Shown: positions 1 through 13,879 of the stretch, piece after piece
How positions within the stretch are numbered: position 1 is the stretch's first letter
How the letters are laid out: the number at the start of each line of letters is the position of its first letter
Assembly (NCBI GenBank): GCA_047495785.1
Contig: JBLDXI010000139.1
Coordinates: 1-13,879, forward strand
Source: Lepidodermella squamata
Lineage: Eukaryota > Animalia > Gastrotricha
DNA: 13,879 bases
Direction: 5' to 3'
Program-made: the position numbers and the translations under genes
Notes under the pieces: model-generated
Seen by the model: only the letters and a program-made list of their open reading frames with translations
What the model was told of the DNA's origin: nothing
Databases searched by the model: none

Positions 1-1035
1 TGCCGTCCAGGCCGCTATCCTGTCCGGTGACAAGGCTGAGGAGATCCAGGACCTGCTGCTTCTCGACGTTGCTCCTCTCACCCTCGGTATCGAAACTGCT
101 GGCGGTGTCATGACTGCACACATCTCGTGAGAGTCCACCATTCCGACCAAGCAGTCGCAAACCTTCACTACCTATTCGGACAACCAAACTGCTGTCTTGA
201 TTCAGGTAAATATTGATTAGAGATAACTAGCTTTTCGCTTGCCTTAATGATGAAGGATCCTTCCGGAGTCTTTGTGACGAGTACATTTTAAGGATCTAGA
301 CTGCCTTCCTTGAACTGATATTTTCAATATTTTCTCTTGTATTGAGTATTTTATTGGATTTGAGATTAATGTTACGCTTTTCTTTGTATTCAGGTCTACG
401 AAGGTGAGCGTGCCATGACCAAGGACAACAACCTGCTGGGCAAGTTCGAGCTGACCAGCATCCCGCCCGCCCCTCGTGGTGTTCCTCAGATCGACGTCAC
501 CTTCGATATTGATGCCAACGGTATCATGAACGTGTCGGCCGTCGAAAAGAGCACTGGTCGCGAGAACAAGATCACCATCACCAACGACAAGGGCCGTCTG
601 TCAAAGGACGACATCGAGCGCATGGTGAAGGATGCTGACAAGTACCGCGCTGAAGACGACAAGCAGAAGGAGCGCATTCAGTCGAAGAACGCTCTCGAGT
701 CGTACGTCTTCGCCATGAAGCAGTCGGTTGAAGACGAGAAGCTGAAGGACAAGATCAGCGACTCTGACCGTCAGACGATCCAGGACAAGTGCAAGGAAAT
801 GCTGGACTGGCTCGACAAGAACCAGCTGGCCGAGAAGGAAGAGTTCGACCACAAGCAGAAGGAACTCGAGGGCGTCTGCAATCCGATCATCATGAAGGCC
901 TACCAAGCCGGTGGTGGTGCTCCTGGTGGCATGCCTGGCGGTATGCCCGGTGGTATGCCTGGCGCCGGTGGTGCTCCCGGAGCTGGTGGTGCGAGCAGCG
1001 GCCGCGGTGGCCCGACCATTGAGGAAGTCGATTAA
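1..1035 (+). pseudogene. hsp70: Partial Hsp70/Hsc70 copy (end of exon 2 1-205, intron 206-393, exon 3 394-1035) with in-frame TGA at 128-130
   Basis: Matches the minus-strand gene except 118-134, where [10 protein letters not shown] becomes TAHIS*ESTI. Donor CAG|GTAAAT at 205/206, acceptor TTCAG|GTC at 393/394. The stop could be a sequencing or assembly error. Confidence 0.7.
247..318 (+). ncRNA. Candidate intronic box C/D snoRNA (left-arm copy)
   Basis: Box C ATGATGA 247-253, D'-like CGGA 264-267, C'-like GTGACGA 274-280, box D CTGA 315-318. Guide CTGCCTTCCTTG 301-312 is complementary to conserved 18S CAAGGAAGGCAG. Internal stem GATCCTT/AAGGATC (256-262/290-296). Confidence 0.72.
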
Positions 1036-1295
1036 ATCGCTAATGAATGAACAATCAAATGCATCTCGAATTTCTATAAGAATTTATGTGTCGAACTGAA
1101 AATCAATGTCATCACATGTTTAGTTCGTCCTTTTGTCGGCATAGTAAAACAGGAAAGACATTGCCCTCAGTCATGTTTTATTCAAAAAATACTTATAATG
1201 TTATGTTTTTGTAAGCGAGGCTATCCGGAAAATAGCCGAAAAATCTAGTACATTCAGTATCGGTGTGATGTCGAATTGTGATGCTAAGCATAGAA

Positions 1296-1301
1296 AATAA
1301 A
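1296..1301 (+). promoter_or_regulatory. Possible polyadenylation signal of hsp70 (second AATAAA at 1387-1392; mirrors 5695-5700 and 5604-5609 on minus strand)
   Basis: AATAAA about 260 nt after the stop codon. Confidence 0.4.
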
Positions 1302-1610
1302 GCAACATCAGAATTATATTATGGTCTTGAATTATATATGTCACTGCACGTTTGAGTTGAGAGTAAGTGCAAATACAATCAACATCAATAAAACATCAGA
1401 CTAAGCTCATCAGAATGTGTTTTTTGCGTGTCTTGAAAACCTTACGAGTTTTTTTACCAGGTTCTATGACTAGGTGCTTACTTCCACATGGTCAGATCAA
1501 GGAAACGTATATTACAAGGGTATGACAATTAAACGCGCCTGGTTTATATAAACATTCGCTGAATCATAGCGGTCTCATAGATAGATGAATCGATTAAAAT
1601 ATGTGCATAG

Positions 1611-3335
1611 TAGCCGCTTTTACACTACAAGCACATATGTATTTCTGACTGTTCATAGTAATGAAGTCCACACAGTACCGTCAGATGGGGCGACTTTGGA
1701 CAGTGGGGTGACATTGCCACGGAAAAATGGGGCGACTTTCGCATAGCCATATCTCAGAGGTATCAAGATAAAGACCCCTTGAGTGGGATACCGTTGGAAA
1801 GCCCGAGAAAAGACCAACTGGAATGTCTTGAACATACTTCAGCCTTTAACAATACCTGGTAATTAAACACAGGTAAAGTTGAGCGACAAAATACACTTTT
1901 CGGCAGAATATAGATGACTCTAAAGTCGACCAGGTGTGCTCAAAATGAAAAGACCTTGTCATTTTCGAGCAGCCCCCGACACAAGCTATCCAGCGGTACC
2001 CAACTTGTGAGGTATCCACCTTTCCACCTGCGGTTTGAGTTAGGGCAAAGTCACCCCATCTGCATCTAAACCGTACTCAGGGTCACTTTGCCACCCTTCC
2101 ACGTCATTTATCAAGGTACATACGGCCCAAAAGGTTCCACGACGTATATAATTAAATTCTCCATCATCAGGGCTTTCCATTGACATCCTACTTGACATGT
2201 ATCATGTCTGAGAAAATGACGTCGTGTGTAATCTAAACTCGATCGCAAAAACCTATGGCAATGTCACCCCCATGGCCAAAGTCGCCCCATCTGACGGTAG
2301 TATTAGGTGTTGCGCAATCGCCGCAAGCGATGAAAATGCCAAGTTAAATTTTAATTTTTTGGAAATCAGAGTTCCAATTTGAAGGTCACTGAAATTTTGG
2401 AGGTACATTGAGGTATTGAAGGTATATTGAAGTAAGTATATTGATGGTAATATTTATTAAGATAATGGCGATGAGAGATTTCTGTCATTTTTGTCAATAA
2501 TATAATTAAGTTGGCCACAGCGGTAAATTTGGACCCAGAAATTATAAAAATCCCTATAATATATCAAAAATATATATCAGCTAGTGATCATGGCTCCTCT
2601 TATCGCTTCTTGAGATTAGACTCGGCATTTTAAATAAATTTCTAGCATTAATTGGCAGCTAAGCCAAAAAAGATTTCCTGCTCGACAAAAAATATTTCGA
2701 TTGAAATTTTTTTCTTATTTGATTACAATTTTGGCTTCGACTTCTTTGATAAGAATGCTCAGTTGAATTTATTATTTTTGGGTCTGAGGTTCCAAGCTGA
2801 AGAAATTAAGGTGGATAATCCGCGGAGAAAATCGATTATTTCCGGCCGAACAAGCCCTTTATTAAGCTTCTAATTATTGTTTTAAAATTTGAGAGCCACA
2901 GCAATATTTTCGTGTCTACCTCACCGCCTAATTTGAAAAATTTCTTTGTTATTTATCTCATTTTGGATGCATCCAGATTGTATGCCCTGTTTATGGAAAA
3001 TTTGATTACAGGCCTCAAAAACAGTAATTTAAGTCAATTTTTTGTATCAACGGTAGGTATTTTCATTTTTCTTTCAAAATAACTGCAATTATTGGCAAGT
3101 TATTTTCCCGAGGGATGGAGAAGCAATCAAAAGGCATAGTGACCAATTTTCCCGAATTTTTGCATCATTCTCAATAATTATAAAAAATATTTGATACCTT
3201 CAAAACCCGTAAAACCTTGAAAGATAAAAAGCGAGAAAACTCGAGTTTGAGTATTGCGCAATCAATTATTTGTCTTAATTAATGACGCACATATTAATTA
3301 CACTTCATACTTACGCTCTCGTGTAAAAGCGGCTA
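1611..3335. mobile_element. Putative non-autonomous DNA transposon bounded by 15-bp inverted repeats TAGCCGCTTTTACAC/GTGTAAAAGCGGCTA
   Basis: IR at 1611-1625 and 3321-3335. Flanking direct repeat TAGTA (1608-1612, 3334-3338) overlaps the IR ends. No coding capacity. Confidence 0.5.
1678..2297. mobile_element. 620-bp MITE, Tc1/mariner superfamily-like (probably pogo-type)
   Basis: 22-bp perfect TIR CCGTCAGATGGGGCGACTTTGG, extending imperfectly to about 42 bp through GGGGTGACATTGCCA. TA duplication at 1676-1677 and 2298-2299. Internal repeats of GGGGYGACWTT; no transposase. Confidence 0.88.
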
Positions 3336-3670: not shown

Positions 3671-5385
3671 TACACGAGAGCGTAAGTATGAAGTGTAATT
3701 AATATGTGCGTCATTAATTAAGACAAATAATTGATTGCGTAATACTCAAACTCGAGTTTTCTCGCTTTTTATCTTTCAAGGTTTTACGGGTTTTGAAGGT
3801 ATCAAATATTTTTTATAATTATTGAGAATGATGCAAAAATTCGGGAAAATTGGTCACTATGCCTTTTGATTGCTTCTCCATCCCTCGGGAAAATAACTTG
3901 CCAATAATTGCAGTTATTTTGAAAGAAAAATGAAAATACCTACCGTTGATACAAAAAATTGACTTAAATTACTGTTTTTGAGGCCTGTAATCAAATTTTC
4001 CATAAACAGGGCATACAATCTGGATGCATCCAAAATGAGATAAATAACAAAGAAATTTTTCAAATTAGGCGGTGAGGTAGACACGAAAATATTGCTGTGG
4101 CTCTCAAATTTTAAAACAATAATTAGAAGCTTAATAAAGGGCTTGTTCGGCCGGAAATAATCGATTTTCTCCGCGGATTATCCACCTTAATTTCTTCAGC
4201 TTGGAACCTCAGACCCAAAAATAATAAATTCAACTGAGCATTCTTATCAAAGAAGTCGAAGCCAAAATTGTAATCAAATAAGAAAAAAATTTCAATCGAA
4301 ATATTTTTTGTCGAGCAGGAAATCTTTTTTGGCTTAGCTGCCAATTAATGCTAGAAATTTATTTAAAATGCCGAGTCTAATCTCAAGAAGCGATAAGAGG
4401 AGCCATGATCACTAGCTGATATATATTTTTGATATATTATAGGGATTTTTATAATTTCTGGGTCCAAATTTACCGCTGTGGCCAACTTAATTATATTATT
4501 GACAAAAATGACAGAAATCTCTCATCGCCATTATCTTAATAAATATTACCATCAATATACTTACTTCAATATACCTTCAATACCTCAATGTACCTCCAAA
4601 ATTTCAGTGACCTTCAAATTGGAACTCTGATTTCCAAAAAATTAAAATTTAACTTGGCATTTTCATCGCTTGCGGCGATTGCGCAACACCTAATACTACC
4701 GTCAGATGGGGCGACTTTGGCCATGGGGGTGACATTGCCATAGGTTTTTGCGATCGAGTTTAGATTACACACGACGTCATTTTCTCAGACATGATACATG
4801 TCAAGTAGGATGTCAATGGAAAGCCCTGATGATGGAGAATTTAATTATATACGTCGTGGAACCTTTTGGGCCGTATGTACCTTGATAAATGACGTGGAAG
4901 GGTGGCAAAGTGACCCTGAGTACGGTTTAGATGCAGATGGGGTGACTTTGCCCTAACTCAAACCGCAGGTGGAAAGGTGGATACCTCACAAGTTGGGTAC
5001 CGCTGGATAGCTTGTGTCGGGGGCTGCTCGAAAATGACAAGGTCTTTTCATTTTGAGCACACCTGGTCGACTTTAGAGTCATCTATATTCTGCCGAAAAG
5101 TGTATTTTGTCGCTCAACTTTACCTGTGTTTAATTACCAGGTATTGTTAAAGGCTGAAGTATGTTCAAGACATTCCAGTTGGTCTTTTCTCGGGCTTTCC
5201 AACGGTATCCCACTCAAGGGGTCTTTATCTTGATACCTCTGAGATATGGCTATGCGAAAGTCGCCCCATTTTTCCGTGGCAATGTCACCCCACTGTCCAA
5301 AGTCGCCCCATCTGACGGTACTGTGTGGACTTCATTACTATGAACAGTCAGAAATACATATGTGCTTGTAGTGTAAAAGCGGCTA
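3671..5385. mobile_element. Mirror copy of the putative TIR element, lacking the last 10 nt of its inner IR
   Basis: Outer IR GTGTAAAAGCGGCTA at 5371-5385; the inner end is cut at the palindrome junction and only TACAC remains. Confidence 0.45.
4699..5318. mobile_element. Mirror copy of the 620-bp MITE
   Basis: TA|CCGTCAGATGGGG at 4697-4711 and CCCCATCTGACGG|TA ending at 5320. Confidence 0.88.
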
Positions 5386-5960
5386 CTATGCACATATTTT
5401 AATCGATTCATCTATCTATGAGACCGCTATGATTCAGCGAATGTTTATATAAACCAGGCGCGTTTAATTGTCATACCCTTGTAATATACGTTTCCTTGAT
5501 CTGACCATGTGGAAGTAAGCACCTAGTCATAGAACCTGGTAAAAAAACTCGTAAGGTTTTCAAGACACGCAAAAAACACATTCTGATGAGCTTAGTCTGA
5601 TGTTTTATTGATGTTGATTGTATTTGCACTTACTCTCAACTCAAACGTGCAGTGACATATATAATTCAAGACCATAATATAATTCTGATGTTGCTTTATT
5701 TTCTATGCTTAGCATCACAATTCGACATCACACCGATACTGAATGTACTAGATTTTTCGGCTATTTTCCGGATAGCCTCGCTTACAAAAACATAACATTA
5801 TAAGTATTTTTTGAATAAAACATGACTGAGGGCAATGTCTTTCCTGTTTTACTATGCCGACAAAAGGACGAACTAAACATGTGATGACATTGATTTTCAG
5901 TTCGACACATAAATTCTTATAGAAATTCGAGATGCATTTGATTGTTCATTCATTAGCGAT

Positions 5961-8171
5961 TTAATCGACTTCCTCAATGGTCGGGCCACCGCGGCCGCTG
6001 CTCGCACCACCAGCTCCGGGAGCACCACCGGCGCCAGGCATACCACCGGGCATACCGCCAGGCATGCCACCAGGAGCACCACCACCGGCTTGGTAGGCCT
6101 TCATGATGATCGGATTGCAGACGCCCTCGAGTTCCTTCTGCTTGTGGTCGAACTCTTCCTTCTCGGCCAGCTGGTTCTTGTCGAGCCAGTCCAGCATTTC
6201 CTTGCACTTGTCCTGGATCGTCTGACGGTCAGAGTCGCTGATCTTGTCCTTCAGCTTCTCGTCTTCAACCGACTGCTTCATGGCGAAGACGTACGACTCG
6301 AGAGCGTTCTTCGACTGAATGCGCTCCTTCTGCTTGTCGTCTTCAGCGCGGTACTTGTCAGCATCCTTCACCATGCGCTCGATGTCGTCCTTTGACAGAC
6401 GGCCCTTGTCGTTGGTGATGGTGATCTTGTTCTCGCGACCAGTGCTCTTTTCGACGGCCGACACGTTCATGATACCGTTGGCATCAATATCGAAGGTGAC
6501 GTCGATCTGAGGAACACCACGAGGGGCGGGCGGGATGCTGGTCAGCTCGAACTTGCCCAGCAGGTTGTTGTCCTTGGTCATGGCACGCTCACCTTCGTAG
6601 ACCTGAATACAAAGAAAAGCGTAACATTAATCTCAAATCCAATAAAATACTCAATACAAGAGAAAATATTGAAAATATCAGTTCAAGGAAGGCAGTCTAG
6701 ATCCTTAAAATGTACTCGTCACAAAGACTCCGGAAGGATCCTTCATCATTAAGGCAAGCGAAAAGCTAGTTATCTCTAATCAATATTTACCTGAATCAAG
6801 ACAGCAGTTTGGTTGTCCGAATAGGTAGTGAAGGTTTGCGACTGCTTGGTCGGAATGGTGGTGTTGCGCTTGATGATAGCAGTCATGACACCGCCAGCAG
6901 TTTCGATACCGAGGGTGAGAGGAGCAACGTCGAGAAGCAGCAGGTCCTGGATCTCCTCAGCCTTGTCACCGGACAGGATAGCGGCCTGGACGGCAGCACC
7001 GTAGGCGACGGCTTCGTCGGGGTTGATCGACTTGTTGAGCTCCTTGCCGTTGAAGAAGTCTTGCAGCAGCTTCTGGACCTTCGGGATACGAGTAGAACCA
7101 CCGACCAACACAACTTCGTGAATTTGGGCCTTGTCCATCTTAGCATCACGCAGTGACTTTTCGACGGGCTCGAGGGTGCCGCGGAACAAGTCAGCGTTCA
7201 GCTCTTCGAAACGAGCACGGGTGATGTTCGAGTAGAAATCAATGCCGTCATACAGCGAATCGATTTCAACAGAGGCCTGGGTGCTGGACGAGAGGGAACG
7301 CTTCGCACGCTCGCAAGCGGTACGCAGACGACGGAGGGCACGCTTGTTCTCCGAGATGTCCTTCTTGTTCTTGCGCTTGAATTCTTCGACGAAGTAGTTG
7401 ACCATGCGGTTATCGAAATCTTCACCACCCAAGTGAGTATCACCAGCAGTAGACTTGACTTCGAAGATACCGTCTTCGATGGTCAGGATGGAGACATCGA
7501 AGGTACCACCTCCCAAGTCGAAGATGAGAACGTTGCGCTCACCACCAACCTTCTTGTCAAGACCGTAGGCAATGGCGGCGGCAGTCGGTTCGTTGATGAT
7601 GCGGAGGACATTCATGCCAGAGATGGTGCCGGCATCCTTGGTAGCTTGACGCTGCGAGTCGTTGAAATACGCAGGGACAGTAACGACAGCGTTAGTGACT
7701 TTCTTGCCCAAGTAGGCTTCAGCGATCTCCTTCATCTTCGTGAGGACCATGGCAGAGATTTCTTCGGGGAAGAACGTCTTGGTCTCACCCTTGTACAACA
7801 CCTGGATTTTCGGCTTGCCACTGTCGGCAACAACCTTGAACGGCCAGTGCTTCATGTCGCTCTGGACCACGGGGTCATCAAAACGACGGCCGATGAGACG
7901 CTTCGCGTCGAAGACGGTGTTTTCAGGGTTCATGGCGACCTGGTTCTTCGCGGCATCACCGATCAACCTCTCGGTGTCGGTGAAGGCTACGTAGGACGGC
8001 GTAGTCCTGTTACCCTGGTCGTTGGCGATGATTTCAACTGTAAAAATGCGTAATTAGGTCAAAATCCAAGTAAATTATTTGGGATAACATACCCTTTCCG
8101 TGTTGAAAGACACCGACGCAGGAGTAAGTAGTACCCAAATCAATACCAATCGCGGGAGCTTTAGCAGCCAT
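5961..8171 (-). CDS. hsp70: Cytosolic Hsp70/Hsc70 chaperone, 655 aa; exons 8171-8093, 8037-6791, 6602-5961
   Basis: Starts [26 protein letters not shown]|[19 protein letters not shown]. Contains signatures [14 protein letters not shown] and [18 protein letters not shown] repeats and C-terminal [12 protein letters not shown] introns 8092-8038 (55 bp) and 6790-6603 (188 bp) restore the frame (79+1247+642=1968 nt). Introns and GGMP repeats suggest the cognate (HSPA8-like) type. Confidence 0.97.
6678..6749 (-). ncRNA. Candidate intronic box C/D snoRNA in hsp70 intron 2 (intact host copy)
   Basis: Mirror of 247-318, in sense orientation to the host gene; box D lies 75 nt upstream of the 3' splice site. 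Confidence 0.72.
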
Positions 8172-8288
8172 ATTTGTTAGTCGAAATGTTCAACAGATAG
8201 AATAAAATATAACTAACAAGTCCTCAAATGCACTCGCTGTATTTCTGTCGCGTCGAAGAGTGAAGAGACTAGAAGGATACCTACGCAA

Positions 8289-8295
8289 ATATATA
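8289..8295 (-). promoter_or_regulatory. hsp70 TATA box (TATATAT)
   Basis: About 120 nt upstream of the ATG. A pyrimidine-rich initiator-like TCTCTTCACTCTTC lies about 30 nt downstream (8255-8268, minus). Confidence 0.6.
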
Positions 8296-8314
8296 CGGCG
8301 TTGCCGGCACACGC

Positions 8315-8338
8315 TCAGGATCAGGATCAGGATCAGGA
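8315..8338 (-). repeat. (TCCTGA)4 microsatellite tail of the LINE
   Basis: TCAGGA x4 on the plus strand, at the expected LINE 3' terminus. Confidence 0.85.
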
Positions 8339-8751
8339 ATTACGATTTCTCCTCGCCCTGACGGACTCAAGCTTTCGCCATAAGGCGGAGCTTGTGAGAA
8401 AATCGCGAGCTTACGCTCTAGGAAAGTTTGAACTGGTTTACTAACTACTTGATTGAAATCCCTACCCCTGGTACTCCAGTTATTGCTGACTGTTTCTCCA
8501 GGGCCCAGGCATTAGTGCCCAGGTGGCTTTTCCACTCACTCAGCGAAGCCTACAAACGCCGTCGTAGCAAGAAAGCTACCAAAAGACTAGTTGGAGAATT
8601 ATTTACAAGAGTAGAGATAATTTACAAGAGGTAAATCCACGGAGCTAAAATATAGATAATTTAATGACGGAGCTATAAAAGAAAATAAAGTATATTACAT
8701 TTGGTTGAGTATAGGCTTTGAAAAATATAAATAGAAATTTGGAAAACTCAT

Positions 8752-9714
8752 TTAGTTTGGCACGTAGTTGTAGACGAAGGCGGCTTTGGAGTACGGATTG
8801 AACGCGACCTGCGGCTGCAGAGAGGCGTTGAGTTCCTTCTTCTTTCGCTCGCTCTTCACCTTGATGATGGCGTCGTGTTTGGCCTGTTCGCGTAGGAATT
8901 CGAGCGTGGCTTGCCGGCACGCCTTTGTGGAAGCGGACAGCCTGATCTTCGCTGGCAGCTGGTTCCACCACTGGATGGCCTTGGTTGGGAACGAGCGCTG
9001 GCCTGTGGCGAGCTTGCACGATGGTTTGACGTACTTCCCGGTGGCGGCGCCTCGAGTGTTGTGGTCATGCTGTTGGTTCATCGGCTTGACTAGCGACGAG
9101 AGTGCCTCGGGGGTCTCAGGATCCCTGCTGCACTTCCACATGGTTGTAGCCAGGTGGACCAGTCGTTTGCCTTGCAGATTCACCCATCGCAATCGCACGA
9201 GAACTTCATCGGCGGGCACGTCAGGACTGACGTCGAGAACGGCACGAACGGCTTTGTTTTGCGCGTGTTGAAGTCGATCCAGCTGGGTCTTGCAGCCCTG
9301 ATCGATGACGGCGTCGCAGTAGTTGAACTTCGACCCGATGATGCCGTCGTACATCATTGTTCGAGTCTTCAGGTCGGTGTGCCGAGCCGCTTTACGTAGT
9401 GCGTAGGTACCACTTCTTGCGGCTTTGATCAGATGATCGACGTGCTTTTCCATGGTGAGCTTTGAGTCCAGATAGACTCCCAGGATCTTCACGTGGTCAA
9501 GTGGCGGCAGATCGACTTCACCGAATCGAATTTCTGGAGCAGAAGCCTGTTGGTTAGACAAAAACATATAATTAGATTTGTCCCGATTCACTTTAAGACA
9601 GTTGGCGTGTAACCAATCGCCGATACTGCGAAGGTCCGCCTCTAGCTTCGCCTTGACTTCTTCAGGCGTCTTCCCACGGGCCACGATCGTTGTGTCGTCG
9701 GCGAACAGCGATGC
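8752..9714 (-). pseudogene. C-terminal part of LINE ORF2 reverse transcriptase (no native start; endonuclease and RT N-terminus missing)
   Basis: 310-aa ORF 8752..9684 extended upstream to the FADD motif; in-frame TAG at 9735-9733 in flanking DNA. Confidence 0.88.
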
Positions 9715-9729
9715 GATGCTGTTTTTGCA

Positions 9730-9744
9730 TTTCTAGAACCTTCC
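9730..9744. promoter_or_regulatory. Heat-shock element (three perfect alternating nGAAn units)
   Basis: tTTCtaGAAccTTCc matches the HSF consensus and lies immediately beyond the LINE 5' end. Confidence 0.75.
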
Positions 9745-9745
9745 A

Positions 9746-9759
9746 TCACGTGACTCAGC
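9746..9759. promoter_or_regulatory. Overlapping E-box (TCACGTGA) and AP-1/ARE-like site (TGACTCAGC)
   Basis: CACGTG 9747-9752 and TGACTCA 9751-9757, directly adjacent to the HSE. Confidence 0.5.
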
Positions 9760-10148
9760 GACGCGTGCTAACAACGCCATTATCGTTAATAATCAAAATA
9801 CATTAACTCTTTATTTTAGCAACTTTTTAGGACCTTGAAATTATTTGCTGTCAAATACTACGCCGCGAATTTTGAAATCGCTCTCACACGTGCGGAGATT
9901 AGAAGTAATTTTATTTTACACCCCGTTTTGGCGGTGATAAGGTATTCCGGGGTAGCCCCATTGTATAGTATAGTGATTACATTGCCAGATTCACCTGATT
10001 ACAATTGCCAGAAATACCGCTGCTTCCAATTTTTTGGGCACTTCAGCAAGATGCTGCCAATCAGGTTTTTCAACCGAGGAACGGAAGGATTGGTTGAATT
10101 ATGGTTGAATAATTTTAATGTTAATCATTATTAGAATTATTAGAAAAA

Positions 10149-10544
10149 ATGAACATTGATATCAGCAGGTTTTTGGACGATGTTTGGCTGCCCAATCAGG
10201 ACATGAAAATTCCTACTGCAAAACCAATCGATAACCTCAGTCAAAAGCGCCAGCTTCAAGCAGCCTGCTTATTTTGTCTAGCCCAAAACATGGCAGATAT
10301 TGACGGTTATCAGTTCGAATCAGATGCGAAGAGTAGCCAATTATGGCAAGCCTGTGCGTCATTCCCAGAAGATTTGCTATCACTAATAGCTTATTACGAA
10401 ATGACCTATGCAGTATTGGCAGGTGAAAACAACGTTGATGTCCTTCAGCTAATCGAAAAAATTGCCCGACTGGGTCAGAAAATTGCCGATCCGAATATTT
10501 CCGACTCTGATCTTTCCGACGCGATTAGTTGTTGGATGAAATAA
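10149..10544 (+). CDS. Hypothetical protein (131 aa; may be the last exon of a spliced gene)
   Basis: ATG-initiated ORF with protein-like helical composition in AT-rich context. Possible acceptors ATTATTAG end at 10134 and 10143. No family recognised. Confidence 0.5.
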   Translation: MNIDISRFLDDVWLPNQDMKIPTAKPIDNLSQKRQLQAACLFCLAQNMADIDGYQFESDAKSSQLWQACASFPEDLLSLIAYYEMTYAVLAGENNVDVLQLIEKIARLGQKIADPNISDSDLSDAISCWMK

Positions 10545-10613: not shown

Positions 10614-12883
<2,270 letters not shown>

Positions 12884-13879
12884 GTAAATTCCCAAGCTTG
12901 ATTTCCAACCTGATTTTTGCTAAGTTTTCTCCCAAAATTCGATTTCTATTATTTTCGACGCAAGAAACCAATCGAATTGTAATTGGGTTCTGATTGAGAT
13001 GTCGCGATTTTTCTTTTGAAATATGGTCGAGCTTGTCCTGGCGTTTGAAAATCTTTGAATATAGATATTCGAAAATTTCACTGACTGTCAGTTTTATTTT
13101 CAGAATGTAGTTCGTTTATAGAACAGCGTGTTCTAAAACTTGGGCGATTTTTTTTAAATTCAACTATTTTCTAAATTGAACCCACCGAGAGAAAATTCCA
13201 ACGTTTATCCGCGGCAGAAACTGAAAATTTACCGGAGAAAACCTGGAAAACCCCGATGGTAACTGGTTCGTTAATTTTTGGTATTTTACCCGGTTGGACT
13301 AAAAATATCTCCGGATGTTGCTAATCCCATTGAGAAATCCCATACTTTATTCTCGTGATTTTTTTTTAATTTTCTACCTCGAGAAACTTCTAACCTCGAG
13401 CCCAATTCAATTTTATTAGCTAAAATAAATCCGCAAAAACAAAACCGAGCCACAAATTTGGCGCAAAGAAACGAAAAACATGTGAATCATGTCTGATTAT
13501 TGGAGCCAGCAGAACTTTGAACTTGAAATATGCAATTGAGTCTAAATTCAATTGAATAAATAAATATGCATCATACGACACCATACTTAAGCCACAGTCA
13601 AATCTAGCTGCAAAAACAAAATAAATCGACGTACAATTAAGCATGTTTTTAAAAGAAGCGCATAGTCTCTAGTTTTTCGATAATTCATAAATCGAATTAG
13701 ATAACACGTTTAGTTCCATACTCTAGTGGAAAAGCCCTTATATAATAGCCTCTATGATATCATGTAAATATTAACAAAGAAAAGAGGTAGAAAAAGGAAA
13801 AGCAGTAATTTAGAACAGTTAGAATCACGCGTAGAAAATATCGTTTGAGATTATCGTCACCTTGCTGATCGGCACGAAG

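Follow-up and report, generated by a model that had tools for sequence, protein, structure and literature searches.

A polymorphic LINE insertion parts the heat-shock element from the TATA box of a cognate hsc70 gene

The window, as the whole 13,879-nt stretch of DNA analysed here is called, carries a gene of the cytosolic Hsp70 family on its reverse strand (Table 1). The HSP70 domain, an EEVD end followed by a stop codon (5961-5975) and relatives named as cognates are all present. The closest named relatives, at 88-90% identity, are mollusc, insect and vertebrate proteins named 'heat shock cognate' (Hsc70-4, HSPA8). These relatives and the Pfam domain were obtained with single-exon queries. 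The gene is accordingly a cognate-type, intron-containing hsc70 and not a classic intronless inducible hsp70. An earlier note on this DNA, which had named it hsp70, was right about the family but not about the type. No known Rfam family was found at the gathering threshold anywhere in the window, including intron 2 of hsc70.

Table 1. Coordinates and strands of the features at the hsc70 locus (window positions, except in the last row).
Feature	Position	Strand	Remarks
hsc70 (HSPA8/Hsc70-4-type) gene	5961..8171	-	ATG 8171; 656 codons; 2 introns
hsc70 exon 3	5961-6602	-	protein end ...PTIEEVD, then stop
hsc70 intron 2	6603-6790	-	splice sites by reading the sequence
hsc70 exon 2	6791-8037	-	Pfam HSP70, E 1.6e-184
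hsc70 intron 1	8038-8092	-	joint 8037->8093 present in RNA-like run X2; GT..AG on gene strand
hsc70 exon 1	8093-8171	-	splice sites by reading the sequence
5′ UTR, ~90 nt	8172..8261	-	putative start A 8261 in Inr-like TCACTCT
TATA box	8289-8295	-	ATATATA on + strand, TATATAT on gene strand; -34..-28 from putative start
Original promoter remnant, TATA to insertion point, 20 nt	8296..8315	-	contains CCGGCA, common to the ortholog
5′-truncated non-LTR retrotransposon (LINE), 1,414 bp	8316..9729	-	co-oriented with hsc70
LINE tail, (CCTGAT)3CCTG	8316-8337	-	sequence reading
LINE 3′ UTR	8338-8751	-	sequence reading
LINE ORF2, C-terminal part	8752-9720	-	323-codon open frame; translation
HSE GAAGGTTCTAGAA	9731..9743	-	three perfect alternating nGAAn units; TTCTAGAACCTTC as read in the window
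TCACGTGA, E-box/CLEAR-like CACGTG box	9746-9753	.	sequence reading; overlaps TGACTCAGC
TGACTCAGC, AP-1/ARE-like site	9751-9759	.	sequence reading
131-aa ORF, no Pfam family	10149..10544	+	shares the intergenic region; X2 depth 14-60
POLQ-like helicase gene, front part	10620..12993	+	Helicase_C, HTH_61 and POLQ_helical domains
Ortholog TATAA	L001 5666-5670		counterpart of the window TATA box

The 3′ part of the gene lies within a palindrome. Positions 1-3325 of the window are the reverse complement of 3671-6995, giving arms of 3,325 nt around a 345-nt centre with 11 differences, and two hsc70 3′ parts are thereby set tail to tail. Ten of the 11 differences fall within 118-134, where the left arm reads ...MTAHIS*ES..., with a stop codon, as against ...MTAIIKRNT.... 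Since position 1 already falls within the left arm, the palindrome may extend further to the left. It may be genuine and young, or else an assembly artefact of the fold-back kind, and hsc70 may be duplicated in it, which would buffer any effect of the insertion. Each arm also holds a unit of ~620 nt (1676-2299 and 4697-5320), bounded by 44-nt inverted repeats (TACCGTCAGATGGGGCGACTTTGG...), which looks like a MITE or fold-back transposon.

The TATA box stands where the earlier note had placed it, and the start of the transcript lies just downstream. Public run X2 was taken as RNA on the basis of the intron 1 joint, a near-zero depth across much of the spacer and a contig depth of ~43,000-48,000 on the hsc70 exons, which is a poor measure of expression from a run with no conditions given. 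The X2 contigs that pass through the hsc70 5′ UTR stop near 8262, ~27 nt downstream of the TATA box. Two high-depth X2 contigs match the window through exon 1 and the adjoining 12 nt of 5′ UTR, and from 8183 they continue into unrelated sequence. A 5′-UTR intron or a trans-spliced leader at this loose end was rejected, as there is no AG acceptor at 8183. Other copies or alleles are therefore likelier than splicing, and the loose ends suggest that much of the mRNA comes from further copies or alleles of hsc70 whose 5′ UTRs differ.

Upstream of the core promoter, the HSE is the only perfect three-unit element in the window, where ~0.34 would be expected per orientation, and ~0.03 in the 563-bp LINE-free spacer. 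The earlier note had reported a perfect element at 9730-9744; the element stands, with its limits sharpened to 9731-9743. A scan at one mismatch or fewer from the ATG to the next gene (8172 to 10149) found no other HSE, in keeping with the claim that none lies near the TATA box. In the window allele the HSE is situated 1 nt beyond the 5′ end of the LINE, at -1482 to -1470 from the putative start. It is not the HSE alone that has been moved away, as the CACGTG box and the AP-1/ARE-like site have gone with it. The two sites are putative targets of E-box/CLEAR and AP-1/ARE factors.

The intervening element is recognised as a LINE by its coding sequence and by its copies. Its open frame begins at SIASLFADDTTIV and includes the catalytic motif of reverse transcriptase (SLFADDTTI; FADD). 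A Pfam search of the fragment alone gave no match, owing to its position past most of the RVT_1 model, and a full HMMER search with the frame returned 19,356 relatives. The best long relative, P0122 (1,056 aa), is 42% identical over its residues 765-1038 and carries Exo_endo_phos and RVT_1 (Pfam), the layout of an APE-type non-LTR ORF2. The catalytic motif and the ORF2 homology of an APE-type LINE are both present in the window element, and the family has numerous copies that share their 3′ end and differ in their 5′ ends.

Word depth in run X1 is ~1,000-23,000 across 8316-9729 against ~50-170 in the flanks, a ratio of 10-200, and some X1 pieces are identical to the window LINE over 160 and 229 nt. 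Among the contigs aligned to the window, other copies part from it exactly at 8315, and copies in X2 and X4 continue beyond 9731 ('GAACTGGCAATTCG...'). The high depth, the identical pieces and the copies that continue past 9731 indicate a young, high-copy family, of which the window copy is a 5′-truncated member with a complete 3′ end. The truncated copy lacks a 5′ promoter region of its own. The tandem-repeat tail and the C-terminal '...SFP..AI..WN.LP' may point to CR1/L2/Jockey-like clades. Other copies of the element in runs X1 and X4 carry internal deletions of 72-112 nt at 8384-8459, 8513-8603 and 9073-9186. These affect both the 3′ UTR and the ORF, and the family thus has several subvariants.

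The site is found without the LINE in public data. A 255-nt contig of public run X1 (2024), at a depth of 67, covers 8113-8315 and then directly 9730-9781. It skips 1,414 nt and has no additional letters at the joint, which sets the insertion at 8316-9729, with neither a target-site duplication nor a deletion. An empty-site allele had been proposed in the earlier note as 8314 joined to about 9718; such an allele exists, with its joint at 8315|9730. The same note had set the limits of the LINE at 8315 and ~9717. The tail and the 5′ end are indeed present, but at 8316 and 9729, limits that rest on two independent lines of contig evidence: the empty-site joint and the points at which other copies diverge.

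The gene-strand sequence of the empty site is GCTGAGTCACGTGATG-GAAGGTTCTAGAA-A|AGCGTGTGCCGGCAACGCCG-TATATAT. No target-site duplication was found, as no letters at the empty joint fit both sides. The only overlaps at the LINE junctions are AA (2-nt microhomology) at the 5′ junction and one ambiguous A at the tail. LINE insertions without a target-site duplication are unusual but documented, so its absence does not exclude the element from the LINEs. In the empty allele the HSE occupies -68 to -56, 21 nt from the TATA box (~31 nt from centre to centre), and the removal of the LINE does place the two elements side by side as had been predicted. In the filled allele the sequence next to the 20-nt promoter remnant is the LINE 3′ UTR, which contains no HSE and now forms the proximal promoter, again as the earlier note had it.

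At 8229 (T>A) and 8258 (G>T) the letters of the empty allele are not those of the window. With these two linked differences the filled and empty forms are distinct haplotypes and not the product of a mis-join. The insertion in the proximal promoter segregates, being filled in the window and empty in X1; an uninterrupted site in another public data set makes the insertion allele polymorphic. No contig bridging a filled junction is listed in the public runs, where de Bruijn contigs break at high-copy repeats, and the filled allele thus rests on the assembly itself. In X2 the letters at 8229 and 8258 are of the empty type only, with the former 33 nt from the end of one contig and the latter 4 nt from the ends of 12 contigs. 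Such contigs cannot show that expression of the filled allele is absent.

An orthologous locus was found in two independent metagenome assemblies, on contigs L001 and L083, the second obtained by a cluster look-up. Their promoters are identical, and they therefore represent one species and not independent lineages. The ortholog protein is 96% identical to that of the window, with heavily diverged synonymous sites. Its locus has the same divergent POLQ-like neighbour and no LINE. The promoter reads TCACGTGAC...GATC-GAAGTTTCTAGAA, followed by 32 nt with CCGGCA and then TATAA, with the ATG 86 nt past TATAA. The HSE is conserved as GAAGTTTCTAGAA on both contigs and TCACGTGAC, just upstream of it, conserves the CACGTG box. 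At least three alternating nGAAn units stand close upstream of the TATA box in the X1 allele (21 nt) and in the ortholog (32 nt), and this adjacent arrangement is the ancestral layout. Neither outcome that would have refuted the earlier note arose: the HSE adjoins the TATA box in the empty and the orthologous site alike, and the RNA contigs give no start beyond 9760. Small shares of the sequence words of the window also occur in metagenomes from aquatic and biofilm sources. A metagenome scan with the C-terminal exon gave only distant relatives (at most 77% identity), mostly on transcript-like contigs of ~2 kb, and no further orthologous promoter.

The reading preferred here, with a probability of about 0.75, is that a young, 5′-truncated LINE is polymorphic in the hsc70 promoter and has displaced the upstream module, from which we infer weaker HSF-driven transcription. 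A copy of a high-copy APE-type LINE retrotransposed into the promoter core between -55 and -54, landing between the single conserved HSE, 1 nt away, and the TATA box, 20 nt away. It was joined without duplication or loss of target sequence, and with 2 nt of microhomology at the 5′ junction. The TATA box, Inr and 5′ UTR are left intact, while the HSE, the CACGTG box and the AP-1/ARE-like site are moved 1,414 bp off, with a LINE 3′ UTR devoid of HSEs in their place. The structure, its polymorphism, the ancestral layout and the start of the transcript are thus established, and the weaker transcription is the inferred part. By analogy with promoter insertions in Drosophila hsp70, both basal and stress-induced HSF-dependent transcription of the filled copy would be weaker. 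Altered heat inducibility of the filled allele is plausible on the same analogy. In a cognate hsc70, as opposed to the classic inducible type, an effect on basal expression and one on induction are equally likely. Further induction is possible in cognate genes that carry HSEs (PMC2614971), so the basal and the induced output of the filled gene may both change.

Several other explanations bear on parts of this account. An assembly artefact, in which the LINE was misplaced in the promoter and only the empty site exists, is very improbable. Only the empty junction occurs in the public contigs, and the window also holds the suspicious 3.3-kb near-perfect palindrome. Against this, the insert has a complete 3′ tail and a 5′ truncation with microhomology, it separates neighbouring bases of the empty site without any loss, and its flank differs from the empty allele at the two 5′-UTR positions, as a separate haplotype would. 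The silence of the contigs is to be expected, as de Bruijn assembly does not carry a contig across a repeat with so many copies. The position of the LINE relative to the transcript leads to a further alternative, that it lies within a 5′-UTR intron or that hsc70 starts upstream of 9760. Introns in the 5′ UTR do occur in some hsc70 genes. This possibility is largely refuted by the RNA contigs, which run from exon 1 through the 5′ UTR to an end below the TATA box and Inr; by the lack among the X2 contigs of any joint into the UTR from beyond 9730; and by the loose end at 8183, with no AG acceptor. It is also improbable, if slightly less so than an artefact, that the HSE acts mainly for the neighbour on the divergent side, be it the 131-aa ORF or the POLQ-like gene, and that hsc70 does not depend on it. 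The spacer is shared and bidirectional, and in the ortholog the HSE is ~190 nt from the first coding exon of the neighbour. However, in both species the HSE has the classic place 21-32 nt upstream of the hsc70 TATA box, and in the window it is ~400 nt from the 131-aa ORF. HSEs are moreover usual upstream of hsc70 genes, such as that of Anopheles gambiae hsc70B (PMC2614971).

The alternative with the most weight accepts the insertion as real and assigns it little or no effect, either because HSF and the other factors act over 1.4 kb or because a second hsc70 copy, the palindrome partner or another paralog, supplies the chaperone; it is possible but unlikely. The allele would then be neutral in effect. 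In some promoters HSF can work at long range. The window starts in a near-identical inverted hsc70 copy, and at position 8015 in X1 another letter has a depth of ~177 as against ~46 for the window letter, which suggests several gene copies. Most high-depth X2 contigs depart from the window 5′ UTR at 8183, as would be the case if other copies or alleles carried much of the expression. On the other side, the left palindrome copy has a stop codon in its visible part, and the spacing between HSE and TATA box has been kept within 21-32 nt in two species with diverged synonymous sites, which argues that spacing matters. Insertions of similar size in Drosophila also reduce expression (PMC1592238). 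Beyond the preferred reading of a weakened, polymorphic promoter, it is conceivable, though doubtful, that the filled allele represents a naturally occurring regulatory hypomorph of a principal constitutive hsc70 copy, kept either through buffering by its palindromic twin or through a habitat that favours lower chaperone output.

The insertion of a transposable element into a heat-shock promoter is an already published type of event, and the window provides a further example with no new mechanism. In D. melanogaster, natural insertions in proximal Hsp70 promoters include P elements and, at Hsp70Ba, a Jockey LINE (Walser, Chen & Feder 2006, PMC1592238; Haney & Feder 2009, PMC2793543). Such insertions typically lower expression (PMC1592238), and the open, nucleosome-free state of the promoter has been proposed as the reason for their landing there (PMC1592238; PMC2793543). 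The window resembles these cases in having a segregating element in the proximal promoter near the TATA box, parting the HSE from the core promoter. It differs in that the fly gene is intronless with multiple HSEs, whereas the window gene is an intron-containing hsc70 with a single one. Also unlike the Drosophila cases, the element is a 5′-truncated LINE that ends in (CCTGAT)n and lacks a target-site duplication.

The hsc70B gene of An. gambiae is a constitutive member of the Hsp70 family with a functional HSE and is further inducible (PMC2614971). The window gene likewise carries an HSE and may be constitutively expressed and further inducible, but its promoter is split, while that of hsc70B is intact with no disruption by a transposable element described. 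As for the element, it shares with 5′-truncated APE-type LINEs (CR1/L2/Jockey-like) the reverse transcriptase motif, the C-terminal region of ORF2, and a constant 3′ end with a variable 5′ end. A high copy number, a short tandem-repeat tail and 5′-junction microhomology are further points of likeness. It departs from typical APE-type insertions in the missing target-site duplication, and its nearest long relative is only 42% identical.

The disruption of heat-shock promoters by transposable elements, so far documented mainly in Drosophila, thus extends to an aquatic invertebrate far removed from it, and to a cognate gene. The landing site fits, as one case, the proposal that open, polymerase-loaded heat-shock promoters draw insertions (PMC1592238). 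It is conceivable, though again doubtful, that LINEs in this genome insert time and again where highly expressed genes start, in open regions loaded with polymerase. If true, this would extend the Drosophila idea of heat-shock promoters as targets of transposable elements to retrotransposons and to a distant animal. The locus is also a clean natural experiment, in which a 1.4-kb insertion distinguishes two alleles of a conserved HSE-TATA module. The 5′-UTR SNPs at 8229 and 8258 tag the alleles, so that allele-specific expression, at rest and under heat, could be read from the RNA-seq of a heterozygote.

The remaining observations concern the spacer and its divergent side. The POLQ-like gene is the conserved divergent neighbour of hsc70 in the window and on L001 and L083, and a protein atlas yielded only helicase clusters of a generic kind. 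A look-up of the exact 131-aa protein retrieved no contig, and no counterpart of this ORF was called at the orthologous locus, which has a considerably shorter spacer. The spacer contains a second conserved block, GATTTCAAAATTCGCGGCG at 9860-9885 in the window and ATATTTCAAAATTGCGCGGG at 5483-5510 on L001, which may act in the promoter of the divergent POLQ-side gene. Run X1 also shows clusters of differences at 9782-9828 and 10203-10253 (9 in 47 nt), each at about half depth, and these point to two strongly diverged haplotypes.
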